Positions 6,001 through 55,465 of a stretch of DNA of 64,000 nt are shown here, in pieces. Each line of letters begins with the position of its first letter. Within the stretch, counting starts at the first letter, position 1. The notes under the pieces were generated by a model that worked only from the letters and a program-made list of their open reading frames with translations, was not told the DNA's origin and searched no databases. The translations under genes and the position numbers were made by a program. The DNA lies in the NCBI GenBank assembly GCA_964247055.1, contig OZ176054.1:1240001-1304000 (forward strand), given 5' to 3'. Source of the stretch: Paragordius varius (lineage: Eukaryota; Animalia; Nematomorpha).

Positions 6001-8752
6001 AATTGATAAATGATAAAATATTTAACAAAAATGGCAAAAATCTTATGAAAATGATTTTTTATATTTACCAAAGTAGTGGAATAAAATTATGAACTATACC
6101 AAAACAAATAATTCTATCCGATGTTAATTTAACTCAATTCATTTGGAATCAAATTATTAGGGGCTAGATATTTAGGTTCATGATGAATGACTTTTAACTG
6201 TAAATGATATGCATATATAAGCTTTTTTCTACATAATAATTAATATTTTTTAAGTAATTTATTGGCCATATTTATAAATTTCAATTTTATTTATTTAAAC
6301 TTATTCATTACAAAGCACAATAAATATTTTTTCCTGCTATAGAAATCAGACACCAATTAACATGAGTCCAAACGAAGAATTTGGAGGTGTTTCATCATTA
6401 TTGTCTCAACCAGCTGACTTCTCAAACATTGGCAACAATAAGATTTCAACAAATCCTTCACCAAATTTAATCGAGCATAAGGAGGATGGAAATAAAACGA
6501 CGACGGCAAAAGATTTTGATTTCCGAGTTTTTGATAACAAACATTTTAATTCCAATTCCAATAATCATTTAAATATTTTACCGCCTCCACCACCTAACAG
6601 TGGCACAATTCAACAATCACACTCATCAGGTTTCAATGTTAAACAACCATCATCATCAACTAAAATACAAAAGAGCAATAACCTAAATCAAAAACACTTA
6701 TGTTGGTCACTTAAACCAATAACGGAAATCCCGTTACGGCGAAGATGGAATCGACCGCCAGATGAAATCCTGCAAACGCCTGACGGAAAATTGATTGACC
6801 CAAGACTTAAACATCCCAACTATGTCGAAATGTTTGAAATGATGGCCCTGGCAAAGTAAAATACTTTTACAGCACGAAAAATTTTACACAATATAAAGTT
6901 TAAGACAAAAATATTTTAACCCTGTTTTTGTGTTTTAAAAGACTGTAAAATTGAAATTATACGGACGAAAAAAAGTAAAAAACAAAGAATTTTTAAAGCA
7001 CCCTATGCTTGCTCCGATCGATTTAAATTGTAAATATAAATTATTATAAATAATTATGTATTTACAATTGTTATTAAAAAAAGGAAAATCAAGGGCTAAA
7101 AAGTATGGTTGTCCCTTGAAAAAAATATATTAATCTCTATTTTTTTACGTTTTGCCTGTGCAATTCAAGTGTAATTGAAAACTTCCTTAAAATAATACAT
7201 GTTAAGTAACTCGTGTAGCCAATCGTTTTAGATAATTATTTAAAAACATATTTTAAATTCAATCTAATGTTTTTTATCCACCATAAAATCATTTTATACC
7301 ATATATATTATGTAATTTTGATAACCTTCATGACTTTTTACCATTTCTTTTATCAAAATTATCCTAAATTTTTGTGATTAATTTAGACAAGAGTTGAAAT
7401 CGAATGTAAGTTCAATTCCTGCACCATCTCAGCCAAATGCTACAATGATTGGTAATGTCGCTACCAGGGATCCCAGGCGAGCCAGGCACACTTCAACCAA
7501 TAATGCTCAAACATTAGAAACAACTTTTAATAAGAACAAACCTAGTAAAAAATTTGGTTTTTTTTCAAAAAAAGGATAATCTTTTAGAAATGTTCTTATA
7601 TATTACTAAATTATTGGGTTCTCACAGAGAGAAAACCACACTTTTGCATGCTAATAACAATTTTTTATATAGCAAAGTATTACCTTTTTATATTAATCGT
7701 TTCTATTGCTATATAACGAATTTTTTATTTTAGGTCACGATTACATAGCAATACCAAGTGGGAATAATAATCTCACCCCAGCACACACTTTACAAAAACA
7801 GGATTCGACAGCTTTCAATTCTGATTTCAATGTGGCATCAAATGCAAACATGTATACTCCCAAAAACATGGATAATATAAACAGTCCTGGACTAAAAAAA
7901 GTTGACAAATCTCGACGAGCCTTGAACAGTAATGTAAGTGAGCCAATTGTCACTCAAGAGGTTCCCATCATAATTCAGCCCTTTGCTCAAATTATCGGTT
8001 CGACATCTCTCAATAATAACAATAATACCATGTTTGCAAATATTAAAGATCCCAGTGATTACAGTTTAGCCGCTTCGTTCAATAACATTAGTGGTGGGGG
8101 GAAGAATGCATTTAAAATACCTAAGAAAAAAGCGCCACCTTTGCATAATAATGCTAATGATCAGCAAACACTTAATCAAACAACAACGGCATCAAATTCA
8201 CCTTTAAAAGATAAACCTTCAAATACTTTGCCTCAAGAAGAGATGACAAGCAGCTTAGCATCCATTTATTCTTGTGTCATTTCTATTGCTTCGGTTGAAG
8301 AAGGTAAAAGCCCCGTTGATAAAAATGATGGCTCATTCTCTCCTACAGAAACGGTGACTTCAACAGCTCCACCACCACCAAATAAAACCAAACTCAATTT
8401 ATCCGATTATAAAGCTCGAATCTCTTCAAACACACCCCTAAACACTGAAACATTAAACAGCAAAAACAACTTTAATACCAAGTTTTCAAGACCCTTTACC
8501 AACACAAATGTAAAAACAGTATCAAGCCACCACCAATCTACCAAACAAGACATCACTTGCATAGATATCGATGATGAAAACAATCAAAAAAATCCTGGAA
8601 TACAAAATGAAAAAAGCTCAGGACTCACCTTAAGTAACGTTAATTTAACGGCTTTAAACAATTTGGCTCCGTCAGAAAAAACGGCTAAAAAGTCACAAAA
8701 TATATTTACGCTCTATCAATCAGACCCTGAGAATGACAGTGATGAAGATTAA
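73..8752 (+). CDS. ZC3H4: ZC3H4/ZC3H6-like CCCH zinc-finger protein (Restrictor/Su(s) family), 5'-partial, about 17 exons
   Basis: GT-AG exons join in frame: 73-249, 328-633, 1235-1465, 1534-1645, 1833-1945, 2072-2148, 2308-2705, then exons starting 2860, 3301, 3788, 4485, 4839, 5329, 5650, 6343, 7388, and last exon 7734-8752 (TAA). Three tandem CCCH fingers: [40 protein letters not shown] and [22 protein letters not shown], followed by [14 protein letters not shown], the ZC3H4/6 pattern. C-terminal DPR motifs IDPRLKH and [10 protein letters not shown]3H4 versus ZC3H6 cannot be resolved. Confidence 0.85.
6943..7177. mobile_element. Degenerate MITE of the CAGTAAAAATTGAAATTATAC family (ZC3H4 intron)
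   Basis: Left end ctgtaaaattgaaattatacggacg and right end ttttgcctgtgcaattcaag resemble the inverted termini at 20862-21120. Confidence 0.4.
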
Positions 8753-8900
8753 TTTGATAGAAGTGTGCATGTAAGATAAATCAATCTCATTATGATATAC
8801 AAATTATAATTTATATATATATATAATGGATTCTAGATTTTCACAAATATTCTGAGTTATGCCATTATTTACAAATATATTTCATTTTACCCACTATACA

Positions 8901-8931
<31 letters not shown>

Positions 8932-9000
8932 TCTATCAAATAAATTGTTAAATACGCTTATATATATAATAATAGGATATTTGATAAGAACTCTTGGGCA

Positions 9001-12000
9001 TCTATATATTTATAAAAATGGAAAATGCTGGCTTTGTGATCTGGTACAGGAAAACCGGTAGACCCAATCAAATCCAAATATCGAAAAAATATAATCATTA
9101 ATAAATGTCCCGACAATAGCTTCGCCCTTTTTTTGAAATAGGCCCCCAGTTCGGGCCCACCCCGTATGAAAAACGGGTTTTTTTTGAAAACAGAAGTCCA
9201 CAAAATCGTGTTTTTGAGACAATTTTCCGGAGAACGTGTTGGACCATTCAATTTCAAATATGATTTTTGTTTACTTATTTTCGATTGCGCTGAACATAGT
9301 CGAGCCACTTTTTTGATTTAGGCCCTCTTTTTACCCGCTCCCCCCGTGAAATGCCACCTTTTTCAAAAAACAAAGTCCACAAAAATAATTTTTAAAATCG
9401 ATTTTTCGCCCTAGGTATGAGACCGTAAAAATTCAATAAAGATTCCACGTATTCCCTGTTAAAAGGCAAAAATTTTAGTCTACAGTTTATTTGATGATAG
9501 CTGCTGGGTAAGGAGCTACCCGCTAAAAACTGATTTTTCATATAACTTTGTGATCTGTTTCCGGAAAACGGGTGAAATCATTCAATTCCAAACATCGAAA
9601 AAATTTAATCATTAATGAATGCCCCGACAATAGCTTCGCCCTTTTTTGGAATTAGGTCCCCAGTTCGGGCCCACCCCGTATGAAAAACGGGTTTTTTTTG
9701 AAAACAGAAGTCCACAAAATCGTGTTTTTGAGACAATTTTCCGGAGAACGTGTTGGACCATTCAATTTCAAATATGATTTTTGTTTACTTATTTTCGATT
9801 GCGCTGAACATAGTCGAGCCACTTTTTTGATTTAGGCCCTCTTTTTACCCGCTCCCCCCGTGAAATGCCACCTTTTTCAAAAAACAAAGTCCACAAAAAT
9901 AATTTTTAAAATCGATTTTTCGCCCTAGGTATGAGACCGTAAAAATTCAATAAAGATTCCACGTATTCCCTGTTAAAAGGCAAAAATTTTAGTCTACAGT
10001 TTATTTGATGATAGCTGCTGGGTAAGGAGCTACCCGCTAAAAACTGATTTTTCATATAACTTTGTGATCTGTTTCCGGAAAACGGGTGAAATCATTCAAT
10101 TCCAAACATCGAAAAAATTTAATCATTAATGAATGCCCCGACAATAGCTTCGCCCTTTTTTGAAATTAGGTCCCCAGTTCGGGCCCACCCCGTGTGAAAA
10201 ATGGGTTAAGTCAATTTTTTGGAGAACGTGTTGGACCATTCAATTTCAAATATGATTTTTGTTTACTTATTTTTGATGGGGCTGAACATGGTCGAGTCAC
10301 TTTTTTGATTTAGGCCCTCTTTTTACCCGCTACCCCCGTAAAATGCCATTTTTTTCAAAAAAAACAAAGTCCACAAAAATATTTTTTTGATTGTATTTTT
10401 TTGTCCACGGTATGAGACTCTAAAAATTCGAGAAGGTTTTTTTCGTATTGCCTGTTAAAAGAAAAAAATTTTAGTCAAGCGTTTCTTTGATGATAACTGC
10501 TGAGTAAGGAGTATCTATCATATGTATAGCATGTTAAAAGATATATGGATATTAATACATTATTTATCCTCATCTATATATTTATAAAAATGGAAAATGC
10601 TGGCTTTGTGATCTGGTACAGGAAAACCGGTAGACCCAATCAAATCCAAATATCGAAAAAATATAATCATTAATAAATGTCCCGACAATAGCTTCGCCCT
10701 TTTTTTGAAATAGGCCCCCAGTTCGGGCCCACCCCGTATGAAAAACGGGTTTTTTTTGAAAACAGAAGTCCACAAAATCGTGTTTTTGAGACAATTTTCC
10801 GGAGAACGTGTTGGACCATTCAATTTCAAATATGATTTTTGTTTACTTATTTTCGATTGCGCTGAACATAGTCGAGCCACTTTTTTGATTTAGGCCCTCT
10901 TTTTACCCGCTCCCCCCGTGAAATGCCACCTTTTTCAAAAAACAAAGTCCACAAAAATAATTTTTAAAATCGATTTTTCGCCCTAGGTATGAGACCGTAA
11001 AAATTCAATAAAGATTCCACGTATTCCCTGTTAAAAGGCAAAAATTTTAGTCTACAGTTTATTTGATGATAGCTGCTGGGTAAGGAGCTACCCGCTAAAA
11101 ACTGATTTTTCATATAACTTTGTGATCTGTTTCCGGAAAACGGGTGAAATCATTCAATTCCAAACATCGAAAAAATTTAATCATTAATGAATGCCCCGAC
11201 AATAGCTTCGCCCTTTTTTGGAATTAGGTCCCCAGTTCGGGCCCACCCCGTATGAAAAACGGGTTTTTTTTGAAAACAGAAGTCCACAAAATCGTGTTTT
11301 TGAGACAATTTTCCGGAGAACGTGTTGGACCATTCAATTTCAAATATGATTTTTGTTTACTTATTTTCGATTGCGCTGAACATAGTCGAGCCACTTTTTT
11401 GATTTAGGCCCTCTTTTTACCCGCTCCCCCCGTGAAATGCCACCTTTTTCAAAAAACAAAGTCCACAAAAATAATTTTTAAAATCGATTTTTCGCCCTAG
11501 GTATGAGACCGTAAAAATTCAATAAAGATTCCACGTATTCCCTGTTAAAAGGCAAAAATTTTAGTCTACAGTTTATTTGATGATAGCTGCTGGGTAAGGA
11601 GCTACCCGCTAAAAACTGATTTTTCATATAACTTTGTGATCTGTTTCCGGAAAACGGGTGAAATCATTCAATTCCAAACATCGAAAAAATTTAATCATTA
11701 ATGAATGCCCCGACAATAGCTTCGCCCTTTTTTGGAATTAGGTCCCCAGTTCGGGCCCACCCCGTATGAAAAACGGGTTTTTTTTGAAAACAGAAGTCCA
11801 CAAAATCGTGTTTTTGAGACAATTTTCCGGAGAACGTGTTGGACCATTCAATTTCAAATATGATTTTTGTTTACTTATTTTCGATTGCGCTGAACATAGT
11901 CGAGCCACTTTTTTGATTTAGGCCCTCTTTTTACCCGCTCCCCCCGTGAAATGCCACCTTTTTCAAAAAACAAAGTTCACAAAAATAATTTTTTAAATCG

Positions 12001-12176
12001 ATTTTTCGCCCTAGGTATGAGACTGTAAAAATTCGAGAAAGATTTTTCGTATTGCCTGTTAAAAGGCAAAAATTTTAGTCAAGCGTTTCTTTAATGATAG
12101 ATGCTGAGTAAGGAGTATCTATCATATGTATAGCATGTTCAAAGATATATGGATATTAAAACATTATTTATGGTAA
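9001..12176 (+). repeat. Six ~514-bp tandem units arranged as two 3-unit higher-order blocks (~1572 bp period)
   Basis: Anchor gcttcgccc at 9119, 9633, 10147, 10691, 11205 and 11719 (spacings 514, 514, 544, 514, 514). Blocks restart at 9001 and 10573. Unit 3 has an internal deletion near 10200. Confidence 0.95.
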
Positions 12177-12334
12177 TCTATATATTTATTAAAATGGAAA
12201 ATGCTGGCTTTGTGATCTACAGGAAAACCGGTAGACCCATCAAAATCCAAACTTCGAACCCCCCTCTCTCCCCCCCCCCCCCAGAAGTCCGAAGGACTTC
12301 CTCGGGCTGCGTAGCAGCACGAGATTCACGCTAG
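9001..12334 (+). mobile_element. Non-autonomous composite Helitron carrying a 514-bp tandem array
   Basis: Begins A|TCtatatatttataaaaatgg (A at 9000) and ends CTAG|T (12331-12334, T at 12335). GC-rich hairpin ctcg-g-gctgc-gta-gcagc-a-cgag at 12301-12323 ends 7 nt before CTAG. No TSD. These are canonical Helitron termini. A second copy is at 54217-55465. Confidence 0.88.
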
Positions 12335-12620
12335 TTAAATAATATAAAATTTATTAGAAGCAAAATATATGGAGATATATCAATCAAGGTTATATATATA
12401 TTGTGTATACATTACATTCATGGTGGAAAAATTAAATTGTGTAAATAATTAATACAAAAATCAAAAATAATAATATCTTCAAAAAAGTAACTAACATCTA
12501 TATCTATACTATTGAGTGCCATTTTAATTTAATAAATTTTAGGAAAAGATAAAGATAATAAAAACAATATGATAAAACAAAATCAATATAGATTGGAATT
12601 ATTCTACAGTGTTTTTCATT

Positions 12621-15600
12621 TTATTTGAGATTTATCACAGTTTTACTTAGTGGAGTAGACAAATTGCGTTTATGAACCCTTTTAAATTCAATCGATGAAG
12701 GATGGCTTTGGATTTTGTTAGCAGACGGTTGATTATTTCTATTATCTATTTGATCTAATTTAGATTGATTCCAGCAATCGTTATTTATTAAATAAGTATT
12801 TTGATTTTTATGTGTTTTCCCCATTTTATGTGAAACTGAAGAAAAGGTAGGAGGCGATAATGTAGTAGTCTTCGATAATGGCAAAGTTTGACTTTTTTGT
12901 TTGACATCAAATTCAATCATACTTTCAGGATTATTTTTGTTGATGTTTAGAGTTTTAGGCAAAGAAATTATTGTATCAGATAACGAGGTTTTACAAGGAA
13001 ACCCATCATTTGCGCACATAATTTTGGGGGAATTTGAATGAGCTAATTTGTTTTTATTAAATACATTTCCTAGCGCGGATTTCGATTTATGTAAATAAGA
13101 CTTATCTTCACAATTTACATTATTTAAAATGGTTTCATCAATAGGAATATTGGAATTAACTATTATTTGATCGGTATCAATGATACCGTTGTTATTTTCA
13201 ATAAAATTTGTTTTGTTCTCAATTTTTGTGGATGAATAAGAACCATTTTTGCCGTTTTTTGAAAAGTAATATGTTTCATTATTTAACAAACATTTTTCCG
13301 CTAAAATATGAATCATTTTATGACCTAAGCCACCTTTAAATACTTGACCGCATAAACTTTCAAATAAGACCAAGAAAAAGCGGCGATTATACGCTCGACA
13401 TTGTAACATGTTAAAAGTTATCTTAAGACCATCCTTGGTTGTTTCACTTCCCACCAATGTTCGTATTTCATCTGCAAAAAATAATATAAAGAAAGAATAA
13501 TTATTTATATCCTAAAAAATATGCATCGAAAATGTACAATTTGTTTCGAAAAAAGTTAGTCGGCCTAATATTTCTATTTTTAACGGCCAAAAACATGCAA
13601 ATCAAAATTTTAAAATTAAAGATTTTACTAATCAATATAACTCGCATATAAGTATTTCGCTTCCATACTATCCTTTGTTAAAAATTAATATTTTTACAAA
13701 TTTAGTTTACGCCATAATTAAACCCATTTATATAAGTATTAAATACCAGGAACTGCTGAAATGATTTTGGCTAACGCTAAAACTTTAGTCCTTGCTTTTA
13801 AATTGGCATCTCTTTCCGTGTTGATAGTTGGAGAGTTATTTCGATTAGCCCCATACCAAACGCCATCAGGCCAAAATGTATCACTGTGAATATGTTTTAC
13901 AGTAAAAATTAAAAATTTAAATGCAATAAAACATAAAAAGTAAAAGATATTTTATAAATCATATCATTCTTATTTGGTTCTCTAAAGTTGAGAAAAATTT
14001 TGTAAAATTATTATAATAAATAAAAACAATAGGTCACATCTAAAATTGAGATTTTAAAAATATGTTAATGTATAAAAATGTAGTCTTATATATTTTATCT
14101 TGCCTTTATTTAAATATTTACTTTAATGATAAAAACAATCTCCTATTTAATAATCATTCAACTACGATTATTTAATACCAAATAGGTTATACCGAAATTT
14201 TTGTAGATAGTGATATATTTGTTGTGAGGAGGTTAGATGATCAATTTGTTCGAGCAGTTTTCTATAGTTTTAACAATATATATATAATATATTTTAAATA
14301 ATTCCACAAAATATCTAGTTCTGTTTATAAACAGATTGATTACCTATTCAAAAATCCGCCATAAGTGACTTGAAATAATTGTCGCAAAATAACGACCATT
14401 CGATGTCTTAACCACTGGTTACGGGTTCGTAAATCAAATATTTCATCCATCAGTAATATTAGGACTTTGAAAGTTATATTATCATCTCCCTAATAGCAAA
14501 TGTTATTCCATATAAAGTATGTGGGTAAAACATAGGTCTTAAATTTGATATAATCTGTAAAAAATATTTAACTAAAAAAATTTACATTAATAACTGAATT
14601 AAATGATAAATTAACATGTAAAAAAAATAACAAAAAAGATTTATTTCCTTATTGATAAGTTTTTAGTTCAATAATATTATCAAATTTCCCAAAATGCAAT
14701 ATTAACATAAAAATTTATTAAATTAATAATTGCTAGTGTTTTACAAACCTGTAAATGTGTATTAATATGCGCTTTAATCAATCCATAATTTTGGGCATTG
14801 GCACCCCAAAATATGCCTTGATTTGGATCTGTCAGTTGTTTTACTCCTGGAATGTAGGTCTAATGGTAAAAATTATGAGCTTAAAACAAGTAATTTTTTA
14901 AATATTAAATATTATACCATTGATTTTAGTTAAGATCTGACAATTAAAATAATAATTACTAGCCAATATTATAACTTAAATTTTGAAATTCTAAATAAAC
15001 TATATACGATTGATTTAATACTTAAATTAATAAAAAAAATTTTTTATTAAAAAACACCAAACTTTTTTATTTTTGATACTTTTTAAATTTTAAATCAAAA
15101 ATAAATTGCATTACAGCTAAATGTGCAAATTTTTCGATGCCGTCTTTCATGGTGTCAGAAACGCGAACGACAGAACCGACAATATTTTCGGGGACAGTTT
15201 TAACCATACTTCCCATGGCTCGCATTGATATCTTGAGTGGGTTCACAAATGTGTCCATCTAAAAAAATTATGTATTTTATTGTTTGAAATTTTTCTATAC
15301 ACGCACATATGTATATACACCATTTTTAAGCAAAGGCCATTTTTGGAGCAAAAACCGCTTTTTCTGTTTATATCAATAGATGTTATAATGTTGCGTTTGA
15401 TTAAAAAAATGTTGCTTTTAACCGAAAAATGGTATATCTAGTTTACCCTTTAAGGTTTACCAAATAAATGTCCATTATGTATCATATATCTATCTATAAG
15501 AATAAATGCAATTTGTGCCTTCATAAATTATTTAATGGTAAAAAAATCCCTTTTTTTTGCAAAAACACTTATAATAGTTAAAAATAATATGATATTACAT

Positions 15601-30953: not shown

Positions 30954-31222
30954 TATTATGTATCGAATATTACGAATCGGTGATGAAAATACAAAACAAT
31001 AATAATTTATTAAGAATTTCGATATATTTATACTTTTTAATTAATGATAATTTTAACATGCATGTGCGTCACAATTGTAAGAATATGTCTTTTATTCTAC
31101 GAATATAAATATAAGAATTCCACGAATAATGACGCACAAACACAAACGTAAGATGCGCTTAATATAATAAAATAATGTAAGAAAATATAATGATGCAACG
31201 TTGTAGTATCCACTACATATCA
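30954..31222 (-). repeat. 3' LTR
   Basis: 269 bp with 10 substitutions versus the 5' LTR by manual count (about 96% identical). Confidence 0.93.
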
Positions 31223-32325
31223 TTTTCTTCCTCCTCTAAAAAACGCTTCGGCGGTTTTCGAACTCGGTCTGGATACCGCCTGGGGGCCTCCCTCTGCTCA
31301 ACATCCGATCTCAGTTGATCGGCATGTTTTCGCATCTCTTTTCCATCTTCATCCTTTACTTCATAGGATAATGGCTCCGTCCTTACTTCCACCGTACCCG
31401 GTCGCCATCCTCTTGATGTCTCGCTCTTAATAAATATTGACTGATCCGGTGTGAATTCTCTTAAGGGTCTTGGTGGTGTACTTTCTTTAGGCGTTTCTTT
31501 ATCTTGCAACCAATTCAACGGTGTGTTGATGTTTCTCTTCAAAAACAACGATGCCGGGGTGGTCTTAATCCCGTTATGCCATGAATTACGGGCCAATAAA
31601 ACATTATTTAAAGCCTCCTGACTCTTCACGCCAGGCATCATCATGGAACGGAATCTCGACTTCAACGTATAAATTACTCTTTCTACCAAACCATTTGTCC
31701 TTGGGTGGTAGGGAGCCGACGTCACATGCTTAATGTTCCAGTTTGTCATCTTATCCCGAAAATTGAACGATTTGAAAAAAGTAGCATTATCAGATACTAG
31801 CATTCTTGGAAAACCATAAGAGGAAAACCATTTCTCCAATTGTTTCAAAATCACATCAGATGTAATACTGCTAAGTATCTCCACCTCCACCCATCTTGAG
31901 AACGCGTCAATTAAAACCAACCAATATTTACCACACATGGGACCCGCGATGTCCACATGGAGTCTTTCCCATATTCCCACATTGAAGTTCCATTTATATA
32001 CCGGATTCTCAGCAACGTTCGCCCTGTTCCTTAGACAACACTGACAGTCGTGTACTAACTTTTCAATGTCCTTATCCATTCCGGGCCAAAACACCACCAA
32101 CCTGACTGTGTTTTTCATAGCAACGATACCCGGATGTCCAACATGAAACCAAGCCAAAATTCGTCTTCGTGCAGCTGTTGGGATAACCAACCGATCACCA
32201 ACATATACGAAACCATCGGCTTGTTTGAGATCATTTCTAACGGGTTTGAATGCGGATAATTCCGGTGTTGACCAATCATTATTTTTAAGTGCCATACGTA
32301 GTCGTTTTAACAGTTTATCCTCCAA
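31213..32325 (-). CDS. Gypsy integrase portion of pol (uninterrupted ORF)
   Basis: HHCC finger FHVGHPG..CQCC, DDE core LHVDIAGP / LVSDNA / NGLVERV and C-terminal WRPGTVE..SYEV..HADQLR. The frame runs through the PPT and stops inside the 3' LTR. Confidence 0.9.
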   Translation of the reverse strand: MEDKLLKRLRMALKNNDWSTPELSAFKPVRNDLKQADGFVYVGDRLVIPTAARRRILAWFHVGHPGIVAMKNTVRLVVFWPGMDKDIEKLVHDCQCCLRNRANVAENPVYKWNFNVGIWERLHVDIAGPMCGKYWLVLIDAFSRWVEVEILSSITSDVILKQLEKWFSSYGFPRMLVSDNATFFKSFNFRDKMTNWNIKHVTSAPYHPRTNGLVERVIYTLKSRFRSMMMPGVKSQEALNNVLLARNSWHNGIKTTPASLFLKRNINTPLNWLQDKETPKESTPPRPLREFTPDQSIFIKSETSRGWRPGTVEVRTEPLSYEVKDEDGKEMRKHADQLRSDVEQREAPRRYPDRVRKPPKRFLEEEENDM

Positions 32326-34970
32326 ACAATCTTTTTTATTTGCGTTTTATTTAAATTTAAATCCACGAATGCGATTTGTCGGATTTTTTCGGCCACATAT
32401 TCATCATCATTGTCTACGGATGTCTGACTCTTTTCGGGAAGTCTTGAAAACACATCGGCCATGTTTGTTCATCCCGCAATATATTTCATATCAAAATCAT
32501 ACGCGGCGGCCTTGTAGATCCATCTTAACAATTTACAGTTTTTAATATCACTTAACTTCCGATTATTTCCGAATAAATGAACAACGGCTTATGATCTGAC
32601 CAGACCTCACATTTCTGTCCATAAATATAATAATGGAATTTTTCTAAACCAAATAACAAAGCCTTGGTTTCCAATTCAATCACAGAATAATTTTTCTCTG
32701 CATTCTGGCATTTTCTTGATGCAAATGCAATTGGTACCATACTCTTATTTTCCATTTGCAGAAGTACAGCTCCAAAGCCTTTTGTAGACGCATCCACTTG
32801 TATTATTGTTTTATTATTTATGTTATAAGTGGCAAGTAAAGATTCTCTTGATATTAAGTTTTTTGCTTGCTTGAATTCATTTTGATGTTCTTGTGACCAT
32901 CTCCATTCCTTTTTGGATCCTGTTAGTGCATGTAGATTACTAACTTTGATATGTAAACCAGGAATAAAACGTTCATAAAAATTGAGCAATCCCAAAAATG
33001 ATCTTAACTCAGTTTTATTGGTGGGTGTTGCACATTTAGCAATGGCGTCGAGCTTATCTTGTACAGGGCGGATTCCCTGTTTTGATAACTCAAACCCCAA
33101 AAATTTTATATTCTTCTGATACAGTTTTAATTTATCTTTTCTTAGTGTAAACCCGCATTTTTGTAACTTTGCTAGGTCTCGCTCAGATTTCTATCGTGTT
33201 CCTCTTTTGTTTTACCCACAATCAAAACATCGTCGAGATAAGCCATTGTGCCCCTGCAATCTTTGAGTACCTCATCCATTATTCTCTGGAAAAGCATGGG
33301 AGAAACCTTCAATCCAAATGGTAGGCGATTAAATTGAAAATATCCCATCGGGGTAGTAATAACTAAATATTTTTTACTTTCCACATCCACCGGAATTTGA
33401 AGGTATGCGTCCTTTAAATCAATGGACGAGAACCATGTGGATCCCGCACATTTAGATGCGATCGTGTCAAATGTCGGGATAATCTGAGATATGTTCTACA
33501 TCAAAGAATTGATAGTTACCCGGAAATCAGCGCACACCCTAATTTCCCCATTAGTTTTTACGACGTCAACCGTAGGAGTCGCCCATTCCACATGGTGTTG
33601 TGTTGGATCTTCGGGACTCACTATTCCCAGGTCTATCAGTCTCTGTATTTCCATCTCTACTTTACTCTGTAGTACCAATGGAATTCGCCGTGCAGCGCAG
33701 ACTTTTGGTATTGCATCTGATCGGACATACAATTTGACAGGATCACCGTTGTAACAACCCAATTTCCCGTTAAAGAGTTTTGGAAATCGCTTGAATACAT
33801 CATCATGACCATTATTATTAATAGATGTTATTTGATTAACTTTCACGTTATCCGGCAGGGTCATGCCACAACCAATGATCCACGGCAGCCCAAATATAGG
33901 AGATAACTCTTCTTCCGTCACAAAACATTCTAATTTCTTCGTAATATTTCCCATTGTTACATTGACAACTGTTTTTCCCAAGAGTTTGATTGGGTTGTTT
34001 CCGTAGGAAGTTAATCTGGGAGCACTTTTTAGTAACGGTGCTCCCACCGTCTTCCAAACATTTTTTTTAATCAAAGAAGCCGCAGCTCCAGTATCAAAAA
34101 CCATACTGACAGCTTGGCCATTAATCATAGCGCAAATGTTCGCTTGTGTGCCCCATTTATTATAATTAGCGTTTATATTATCACTATATCGTTTCTTATG
34201 GCGAGACATTGCCCGAAAATGATTTTTTTTATTACAATTGTGGCATATTTTTCCGAACGCGGGACATTGTTTTGGTATATGCGATTTACCACATTTGCTA
34301 CATCTCCGCTTCCATTTATTATTATTGCCATCATCATTTTTTTATATTCCATATTATTACTCTTATGATTATTATTATTATTATCATTCGACCGATTCTT
34401 TTGAATTTTGAGGATACTGCTTGACGACACATGGGAGGCAATATCGGCCCTTGCAAGTTCCTGAGCCAAGGCCATGTCGACAATGGTGGTTAATGACACC
34501 GCCTTCCCATCACACTTCGCATCGGGGAATCGTGAATAAAGATCCACTTCCAATGATTGCAAGTTTAATCCAGCCACAAAACTGTCTCTAATTCTCTCCT
34601 CCACCTCTGTTTGAAATTCAGCCTTTTCCGCCACACTCTTGACTCTTTGAAAAAATTCCGTGAATGTTTCTCCATCATTTCTCCGCAAACGAGCAAACTC
34701 AAACCTTGCAGCGAAGACAGACTTGGCAGGTGAGAAAAGTTTAAGACCAATGTCATGAATTTTAGACCAAGGAGCATCATCAATTGATTCCGGAAAAATC
34801 ATTGTTTCGATCTTATTAATTGTTTTAAGACCAGCTCCAGCCAAAAACAGTACTTTAATATTATCATCATTAATATCAACATTTTTGGAGATCATAACTC
34901 TTTTGACATATCTGATATAGGTGGCAAAATCATAATTGTCATCGTATCCTTCGATTGAAATTTTATCCAT
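32326..34970 (-). pseudogene. Disrupted gag-PR-RT-RNase H of the Gypsy element
   Basis: Frameshift in an A-run near 34340 before CSKCGKSHIPKQC/CHNCNKKNHFRAMS. In-frame TAG at 33496-33498. Frameshifts near 33174, 32585 and 32335. TGA near 32470. Confidence 0.88.
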
Positions 34971-54216: not shown

Positions 54217-55465
54217 CTAGCGTGAATCTCGTGCTGCTACGCAGCCCGAGGAAGTCCTTCGCACTTTTGGGGGGGGGGGGGGGGGGTTCGAAGTTTGGAT
54301 TTTAATGGGTCTACCGGTTTTCCTGTACCAGATCACAAAGCCAGCATTTTCCATTTTTATAAATATATAGATTACCATAAATAATGTTTTAATATCCATA
54401 TATCTTTTAACATGCTATACATATGATAGATACTCCTTACTCAGCAGCTATCATCAAAGAAACGCCTGACTAAAATTTTTGCCTTTTAACAGGCATTACG
54501 AAAAATCCTTCTCGAATTTTTACAGTCTCATACCTTGGGCAAAAAAATACAATCAAAAAAATATTTTTGTGGACTTTGTTTTTTTTTGAAAAAAATGGCA
54601 TTTTACGGGGGGAGCGGGTAAAAAGAGGGCCTAAATCAAAAAAGTGGCTCGGCTATGTTCAGCGCAATCGAAAATAAGTAAACAAAAATCATATTTAAAA
54701 TTGAATGGTCCAACACGTTCTCTGGAAAATTGTCTCAAAGACACGATTTTTGTGGACTTCTGTTTTCAAAAAAACCCGTTTTTCATACGGGGTGGGCCCG
54801 AACTGGGGGCCTATTTCAAAAAAGGGCGAAGCTATTGTCGGGACATTTATTAATGATTGTATTTTTTCGATATTTGGATTTGATTGGGTCTACCGGTTTT
54901 CCGGAAACAGATCACAAAGTTATATGAAAAATCAGTTTTTAGCGGGCAGCTCCTTACCCAGCAGCTATCATCAAATAAACGGTAGACTAAAATTTTTGCC
55001 TTTTAACAGGGAATACGTGGAATCTTTATTGAATTTTTACGGTCCCATACCTAGGGCGAAAAATCGATTTAAAAAATTATTTTTGTGGACTTTGTTTTTT
55101 GAAAAAGGTGGCATTTCACGGGGGGAGCGGGTAAAAAGAGGGCCTAAATCAAAAAAGTGGCTCGGCTATGTTCAGCGCAATCGAAAATAAGTAAACAAAA
55201 ATCATATTTAAAATTGAATGGCCCAACACGTTCTCCGGAAAATTGTCTCAAAGACACGATTTTTGTGGACTTCTGTTTTTTAAAAAAAACCGTTTTTCAT
55301 ACGGGGTGGGCCCGAACTGGGGGCCTATTTCAAAAAAAGGGCGAAGCTATTGTCGGGGCATTCATTAATGATTATATTTTTTCGATATTTGGATTTGATT
55401 GGGTCTACCGGTTTTCCTGTACCAGATCACAAAGCCAGCATTTTCCATTTTTATAAATATATATA
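54217..55465 (-). mobile_element. Second copy of the composite Helitron (two satellite units)
   Basis: 3' CTAG at 54220-54217 with the identical terminal hairpin. Internal TCtatatatttat terminus at 54371. Two units 515 bp apart (54824 and 55339). The outer 5' end merges into (TA)n at about 55465-55480. Confidence 0.88.

Follow-up and report, generated by a model that had tools for sequence, protein, structure and literature searches.

How does a transposable element come to carry several beginnings and a single end? The question is raised by a 3.3-kb, non-coding element at 9001-12334 of a 64,000-nt stretch of Paragordius varius DNA (hereafter the window; GenBank assembly GCA_964247055.1, contig OZ176054.1, C5:1240001-1304000 in our contig labels), which belongs to an AT-rich animal genome assembled to 110.6 Mb in 44 contigs. 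The original prediction, made from the letters of the window, had recognized a Helitron with three nested 5' termini, one 3' terminus and a satellite cargo, and had taken the array for rolling-circle amplification caught in the act. The analysis reported here bears out the architecture and leads to another account of its history. The element is one dispersed, ordinary copy of a young, abundant non-autonomous Helitron family; it is likely to descend from a composite that arose once, spread by transposition and was then reshaped by unequal recombination and gene conversion.

Results

The element is a canonical non-autonomous Helitron that starts with TC after an A and ends with CTAG before a T. 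Read on the forward (+) strand, it comprises three copies of a 31-bp 5' terminus (left terminal sequence, LTS), six units of ~514 bp and one 3' end (right terminal sequence, RTS). A 41-nt pattern for the 5' terminus matched at 9001 and 10573 with no mismatch and at 12177 with one; the base preceding each is A, and the whole window gave five matches against none in shuffled versions of it. The terminus, which starts as TCTATATA... at 9001 and reads TCTATATATTT...GCTGG, is specific over the first 31 nt only, the shared CTTTGTGATCT after them being the start of a unit, so that the longer terminus originally proposed holds for its three occurrences and not for its extent. When folded as DNA, the 3' end gave two adjacent triloop hairpins (12284-12300 and 12301-12323; -15.3 kcal/mol, z -4.65) that stop 11 nt before the CTAG terminus (CTAG at 12331-12334), with T as the next base. 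Pattern matches, shuffles and hairpin fold together confirm three 5' termini, each after A, and a single 3' terminus. No element terminal inverted repeats were found in an inverted-repeat search of 8000-13500, and an Rfam scan of the window gave no match.

The outer 5' terminus (LTS 1, 9001-9031, with A at 9000) opens a block of 1572 bp, in which two 514-bp units (A1, 9032-9545; B1, 9546-10059) and a 451-bp unit with a 36-bp deletion (C1, 10060-10510) are followed by a 62-bp spacer, the 'tail' (10511-10572), which is unrelated to the 3' terminus and here ends in CCTCA. The first internal terminus (LTS 2, 10573-10603) opens a second block of 1604 bp, with units starting at 10604, 11118 and 11632 (A2, 10604-11117; B2, 11118-11631; C2, 11632-12114, 483 bp) and a 62-bp tail of the variant ending in GGTAA (12115-12176). 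In both blocks, the third unit breaks off at unit position 484. The second internal terminus (LTS 3, 12177-12207, one mismatch) leads into the first ~54 nt of a unit with a 3-bp deletion (12208-12258), the usual opening of the short 3' end in this family, then a C-rich tract of a length variable among copies (12259-12282) and the RTS (12284-12334). The order LTS-3 units-LTS-3 units-LTS-RTS with a tandem-repeat body, as originally proposed, is borne out, except that the tail before both internal termini had not been singled out. The C-rich tract, of ~7 to 25 nt, lies directly 5' of the hairpins in all 44 inspected copies that retain the 3' end region. The 514-bp unit itself contains diverged sub-repeats (in the window at 9045-12258, for example at 9045 and 9225, and at 9559 and 9739), the two clear copies being 180 nt apart and ~63-76% alike; its sequence suggests an old higher-order repeat derived from a shorter monomer.

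The two blocks, each a module running from a 5' terminus to a tail, are 100% identical over 1162 bp (9001-10162 and 10573-11734). Identity ends at 10163/11735, inside the third unit, and beyond that point the modules differ by ~15%, by a 36-bp indel and in their tail variants. A perfect match of this length between blocks is what would be seen had a 1.57-kb block been doubled in mis-assembly. The last ~400 bp of the blocks differ, however, as do the tails, and a multi-module layout is present at dozens of loci on many contigs. Because the blocks differ by ~15% and a 36-bp indel after 1162 bp, a simple assembly duplication is unlikely, and we give an artefact of this kind next to no credence.

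The family was traced through the genome by counting exact pattern matches. A 28-mer from 9015-9042, which joins the last 17 nt of the terminus to the first 11 nt of the unit, matched 2191 times and a 30-mer from the 3' terminus 719 times, the reversed control giving none in either case. A 30-mer specific to the unit matched 2951 times (control, 0), or ~1.3 times per 5' terminus. Junctions of tail and terminus numbered 432 for the GGTAA variant and 232 for the CCTCA variant, and ends of the type seen in the 158-bp core at 12177-12334, with unit position 54 joined to the C-tract, numbered 199 (controls, 0).

Simple relatives were sampled by taking 20 isolated 5' termini in genome order on C1, from which 12 complete elements of 0.53-2.6 kb were recovered. 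Each has a single 5' terminus, then the 514-bp-type unit once or more, the 3' region, the C-tract and the hairpins; A precedes the start in 12/12, and the end is CTAG followed by T in 11/12, the 3' end of the remaining one (L054) being degenerate. In the composite sub-family, A precedes 18/18 outer termini and T follows 32/32 CTAG ends, with a TC start in 17/18 of the sampled outer termini. There is no consistent target duplication (none in 11/16 cases, the other five lying in TA-rich low-complexity flanks), the flanks differ between loci, and the copies are dispersed over the contigs. By its TC start, hairpin-CTAG end, insertion between A and T and dispersed copies, the family is canonical Helitron.

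The simple relatives also show what the 514-bp unit is. It had been thought that the units were amplified left ends. In single-terminus relatives the units follow the 31-nt terminus directly, and the unit is therefore the element's ordinary body and not a copy of its terminus. The further prospect that units occur mainly without Helitron ends was checked and not borne out: with only ~1.3 unit 30-mers per 5' terminus, the units are not mainly free satellite, at this stringency.

The innermost 158 bp had been regarded as a complete minimal Helitron in its own right. Full-length matches to this core at 90-100% identity do occur in the genome. In each of the 32 readable core-type ends, which include 29 other loci, the second core of locus L029 and the second copy in the window (54217-55465), the core is preceded by a tail, one to three units and another 5' terminus. 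The core-locus sample may be biased, and pattern positions on C1 and C2 were therefore cross-matched. Among the 34 core-type ends on these two contigs, 26 are composite (22 with an exact tail-terminus junction 74-82 bp upstream, and four by other evidence) and eight are undetermined, only exact matches being listed. A solo core was thus found in none of the 32 sequenced ends and shown for none of the 34 on C1 and C2, so the core is not supported as an independent minimal Helitron; a core that never occurs alone is the outcome that the original prediction itself had named as refuting it. We saw no sign of transposition ever having started at the innermost terminus; the internal termini appear as passengers of a repeated module.

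The multi-start layout is a trait of the family. About 200 ends have the form [5' terminus - 1 to 3 units - tail]n - 5' terminus - short 3' end, and the number of 5' termini per element, three here, ranges from two to >15 at other loci. Much larger multi-start arrays than that at 9001-12334 are also present, one with 11 tail-terminus junctions at ~567-bp spacing (C1:10349587-10355284, -) and one with ~37 junctions at mixed spacings of 580, 776 and 1050 bp and one larger gap (C3:10030847-10053993, +).

The simple element L059 has an identical short 3' end (unit positions 1-54, C-tract and hairpins) reached through an ordinary 30-bp unit junction. In the composite sub-family this 30-bp junction is replaced by 93 bp, made up of the 62-bp tail and the 31-bp terminus, and this is the sole difference. 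All internal junctions carry the same non-terminal 62-bp spacer and never a 3' terminus, and the tail has neither a hairpin nor CTRR. Because the same spacer stands at every internal junction, with no 3' terminus there, we conclude that the junction arose once.

This bears on the published Fusarium and maize model of elements that combine several 5' termini with a single 3' terminus. In it, each additional 5' terminus is left by a separate insertion of one family member into another (repeated nested self-insertion), and the product then transposes from its outermost 5' end as far as the first 3' end. One such insertion is a plausible origin of the first composite, and L029 has two elements only 17 bp apart. 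Independent insertions, however, would not hit one and the same nucleotide each time, with an identical 62-bp spacer left behind, nor do they fit two modules that are identical over 1162 bp or module numbers that run from one to >15 with regular spacing. As the source of the array as a whole, repeated nesting is thus improbable.

An older composite, L042 (C1:2154500-2160500; positions 1881-2164), suggests what the founding event may have been. It consists of a 5' terminus, ~840 bp of body, a spacer, a second 5' terminus and a full simple element with its 3' terminus; the spacer, ~220 bp long, is unrelated AT-rich DNA with the tail at its end. The composite would probably have originated in one event, by which a truncated element, a stretch of unrelated DNA and a second element came to lie one after another. 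Either a truncated element would have read through into its neighbor (read-through or composite transposition, as for Fusarium and maize), or an element would have been tandemly duplicated together with its flank; the origin was probably one of these two, because L042 keeps ~220 bp of unrelated spacer before its second terminus. The composite would then have transposed from its outer 5' terminus to its single 3' terminus. Spread by transposition is shown by the many copies with different flanks, all of the form A|TC...CTAG|T.

The tail variants point the same way. In the sampled copies the tail before the core is GGTAA in 31 cases and CCTCA in one, and the tails at internal junctions are CCTCA in 12 and GGTAA in four. 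The arrangement of this element, CCTCA internally and GGTAA before the core, recurs at no fewer than 11 dispersed loci (at least 11), those closest to the 9001-12334 copy, which implies that composites with two or more modules moved as units. CCTCA tails before cores also exist in the genome, so that the arrangement is a trait of one lineage within the family.

The internal make-up of the units provides a record of later exchange. Unit types were defined from 12 other copies, A-type for the first unit after the terminus and C-type for the last before the tail, and differ at 95 diagnostic alignment columns. A1 is A-type at all 95 and C1 is C-type at all. B1 is a hybrid, C-type over the first ~110-130 nt (the first 7 columns) and A-type at the other 88, and A2 and B2 are 100% identical to A1 and B1. 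C2 passes from C-type to A-type and back to C-type through single clean switches, being B-type to about alignment column 390 (near unit position 390) and then C-type to 484. Mosaics of this kind are the expected products of misaligned homologous exchange, in which C paired with A would give A-B-C, and of gene conversion. Changes in the numbers of units and modules would have followed from such unequal exchange and conversion between repeats.

Among other copies in the genome, those nearest to the element share 93-97% identity with it. Because the identity tract of the two modules ends inside a unit and the element lies several per cent from all its relatives, the comparison points to recent local conversion or unequal crossing-over as having shaped the two modules, whose homogenization most likely took place in situ. 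The first 331 bp of modules are 95-100% conserved family-wide, so that identity within versus between loci is uninformative over this part.

These data can be set against rolling-circle amplification, in which a circle that lacks a 3' terminator, or one released between two 5' nick sites, replicates and integrates head-to-tail. Many 5' ends with one 3' end is the published pattern for this process; every module starts exactly at the 5' terminus and has no 3' terminus, 5' termini outnumber 3' termini by ~3 to 1 in the genome, and modules of 567, 1056 and 1058 bp form long regular arrays at other loci. The junctions, however, would be expected to derive from the termini and not from a fixed foreign spacer; the 62-bp spacer at every junction is unrelated to either terminus, as if made once and then copied. 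A fresh concatemer should also be identical from terminus to tail, whereas identity here stops inside a unit, with ~15% difference and a 36-bp indel after it, and the units are cleanly recombinant, changing type at points within a unit. The family-wide tail-LTS junction, the lack of internal 3' termini, the mosaic units and the identity ending within a unit thus tell against a snapshot of rolling-circle amplification, which we consider unlikely.

The second family copy in the window (54217-55465, -) is 1249 bp long and has the order LTS - A unit - C unit - tail - LTS - short 3' end. The 41-nt terminus pattern matches it at 54331-54371 and 55425-55465 (-). It is the one exception to the TC start among the outer termini sampled, its outer terminus reading TATATA and not TCTATA, and its flanks are TA-repeat. 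A 161-aa open reading frame (ORF) inside it (54705-55190) is probably spurious.

Elsewhere in the window, ORFs at 31213-34970 (-) have integrase (zinc-binding and core), RNase H and aspartyl protease domains; they mark a Ty3/gypsy-type long terminal repeat (LTR) retrotransposon remnant, which lies in the only GC-richer part of the window. The ORFs that flank the Helitron, 7706-8752 and 12621-13457, gave no match in Pfam, and a protein atlas search with 7706-8752 gave no usable match.

Discussion

Taken together, we consider the most probable history to be a composite formed once, carried through the genome by transposition and later remodelled by unequal recombination and gene conversion. Several observations weigh against it. 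Copies were tabulated from the 66 loci read in sequence, so the tabulation is a sample. The founder locus was not found: when 198 bp of the L042 spacer was searched, at least 45 genome copies at 82-95% identity were returned, so that the spacer is itself repeated and has no unique source. Local alignments of the tail with the sequence that precedes the 3' terminus in simple elements scored z 1-2.6 versus shuffles, which is not significant, and the idea that the tail is a remnant of that sequence was rejected as unsupported. Three-unit modules occur at 93% identity in other copies, which means that some recombination events predate the insertion, and the B unit may be among them. Finally, short complete elements of 0.7 and 1.2 kb correspond to the 3' part of longer ones, and they would also fit occasional starts at internal termini.

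This last point raises the possibility that the internal 5' termini are functional nick sites, at any of which the transposase starts or cuts again. Were that so, module-length circles (5' terminus to tail) or nested shorter elements would be released, the 0.7-kb and 1.2-kb elements being such products, and the family's own transposition machinery, not host recombination, would be what builds its higher-order satellite and spreads it. We regard this as doubtful.

An autonomous partner is a further point on which the composite-and-recombination history is exposed. The genome has 16 matches to Helitron_like_N, 12 of them interrupted by stop codons, and among the 16 none is shown to be an intact autonomous partner with the same ends. 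At one locus (L039:131-624, also L061:1007-1500; C2:10244090-10249798), a 5' terminus at 87% and a unit at 84% identity lie ~1.37 kb upstream of a degenerate Rep domain. This locus, read without its 3' end, is a candidate relic of the family's autonomous parent, and its sequence suggests that the unit may be that parent's 5' leader. At L033 (C8:2815695-2819219), a 98% copy of the 3' terminus (1279-1328, -) follows ACCCCACCAA and not a plain C-tract; it adjoins a degenerate Rep domain on the opposite strand.

Multi-start, one-end Helitrons, Helitron-borne satellites and the rolling-circle idea are all published, and no new principle is involved here. In 27 plant genomes, Xiong, Dooner and Du (2016, Plant J 88:1038, as related in PMC12628747) described arrays in which truncated Helitrons have multiple 5' ends but only one 3' end between them, and proposed that rolling-circle replication of a terminator-less circle makes plant centromeric arrays. 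As far as that account goes, the present family resembles the plant arrays in having several to many 5' termini and one 3' terminus, repeats without a 3' end, and over-represented 5' sequences. The plant arrays, as there described, are centromeric, whereas here the copies are dispersed in gene-rich DNA of an animal and have a fixed, unrelated 62-bp spacer at their junctions; against that description, the sequence evidence favors unequal recombination over rolling-circle amplification.

For the FoHeli Helitrons of Fusarium oxysporum (PMC5148889) and the maize Helitrons with multiple termini (PMC3288121), elements in which multiple 5' termini share one 3' terminus were described and a composite-element model was put forward; the Fusarium paper further refers to Helitrons inserted in tandem in Drosophila and in a bat. 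The composite model, with its outer 5' start and its stop at the first 3' end, is shared with the family described here. The duplicated 5' pieces of FoHeli are short (<200 bp) and few, unlike the modules of 0.57-1.6 kb with internal tandem units found here, the number of which reaches double digits at other loci.

Central tandem repeats that seed satellites are documented for Helitrons and Helentrons, as in DINE-TR1 of Drosophila and the Cg170-carrying elements of oyster (PMC8268682), and Heli2Xen of Xenopus has internal 166-bp arrays (PMC12001565). As in the present family, conserved ends surround a satellite-like array whose length varies among copies; unlike it, those elements have no copies of the 5' terminus in their arrays. 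The ends differ too: DINE and the oyster elements are Helentrons, which insert between T and T and have subterminal inverted repeats, whereas the form seen here is the canonical A|TC...hairpin-CTAG|T. A Helentron or DINE-type assignment is ruled out by the A|T insertion, the TC...CTAG ends and the lack of terminal inverted repeats, the central array being all that is common to both.

The element at 9001-12334 is a clear, well-bounded animal example of a transposon body becoming satellite-like DNA. Its precise ends, intact flanks and diagnostic unit types allow the recombination events to be traced in the sequence itself. It also has a practical bearing on annotation, since repeat-finding programs will break up elements of this kind into 'nested' Helitrons that have no independent existence.

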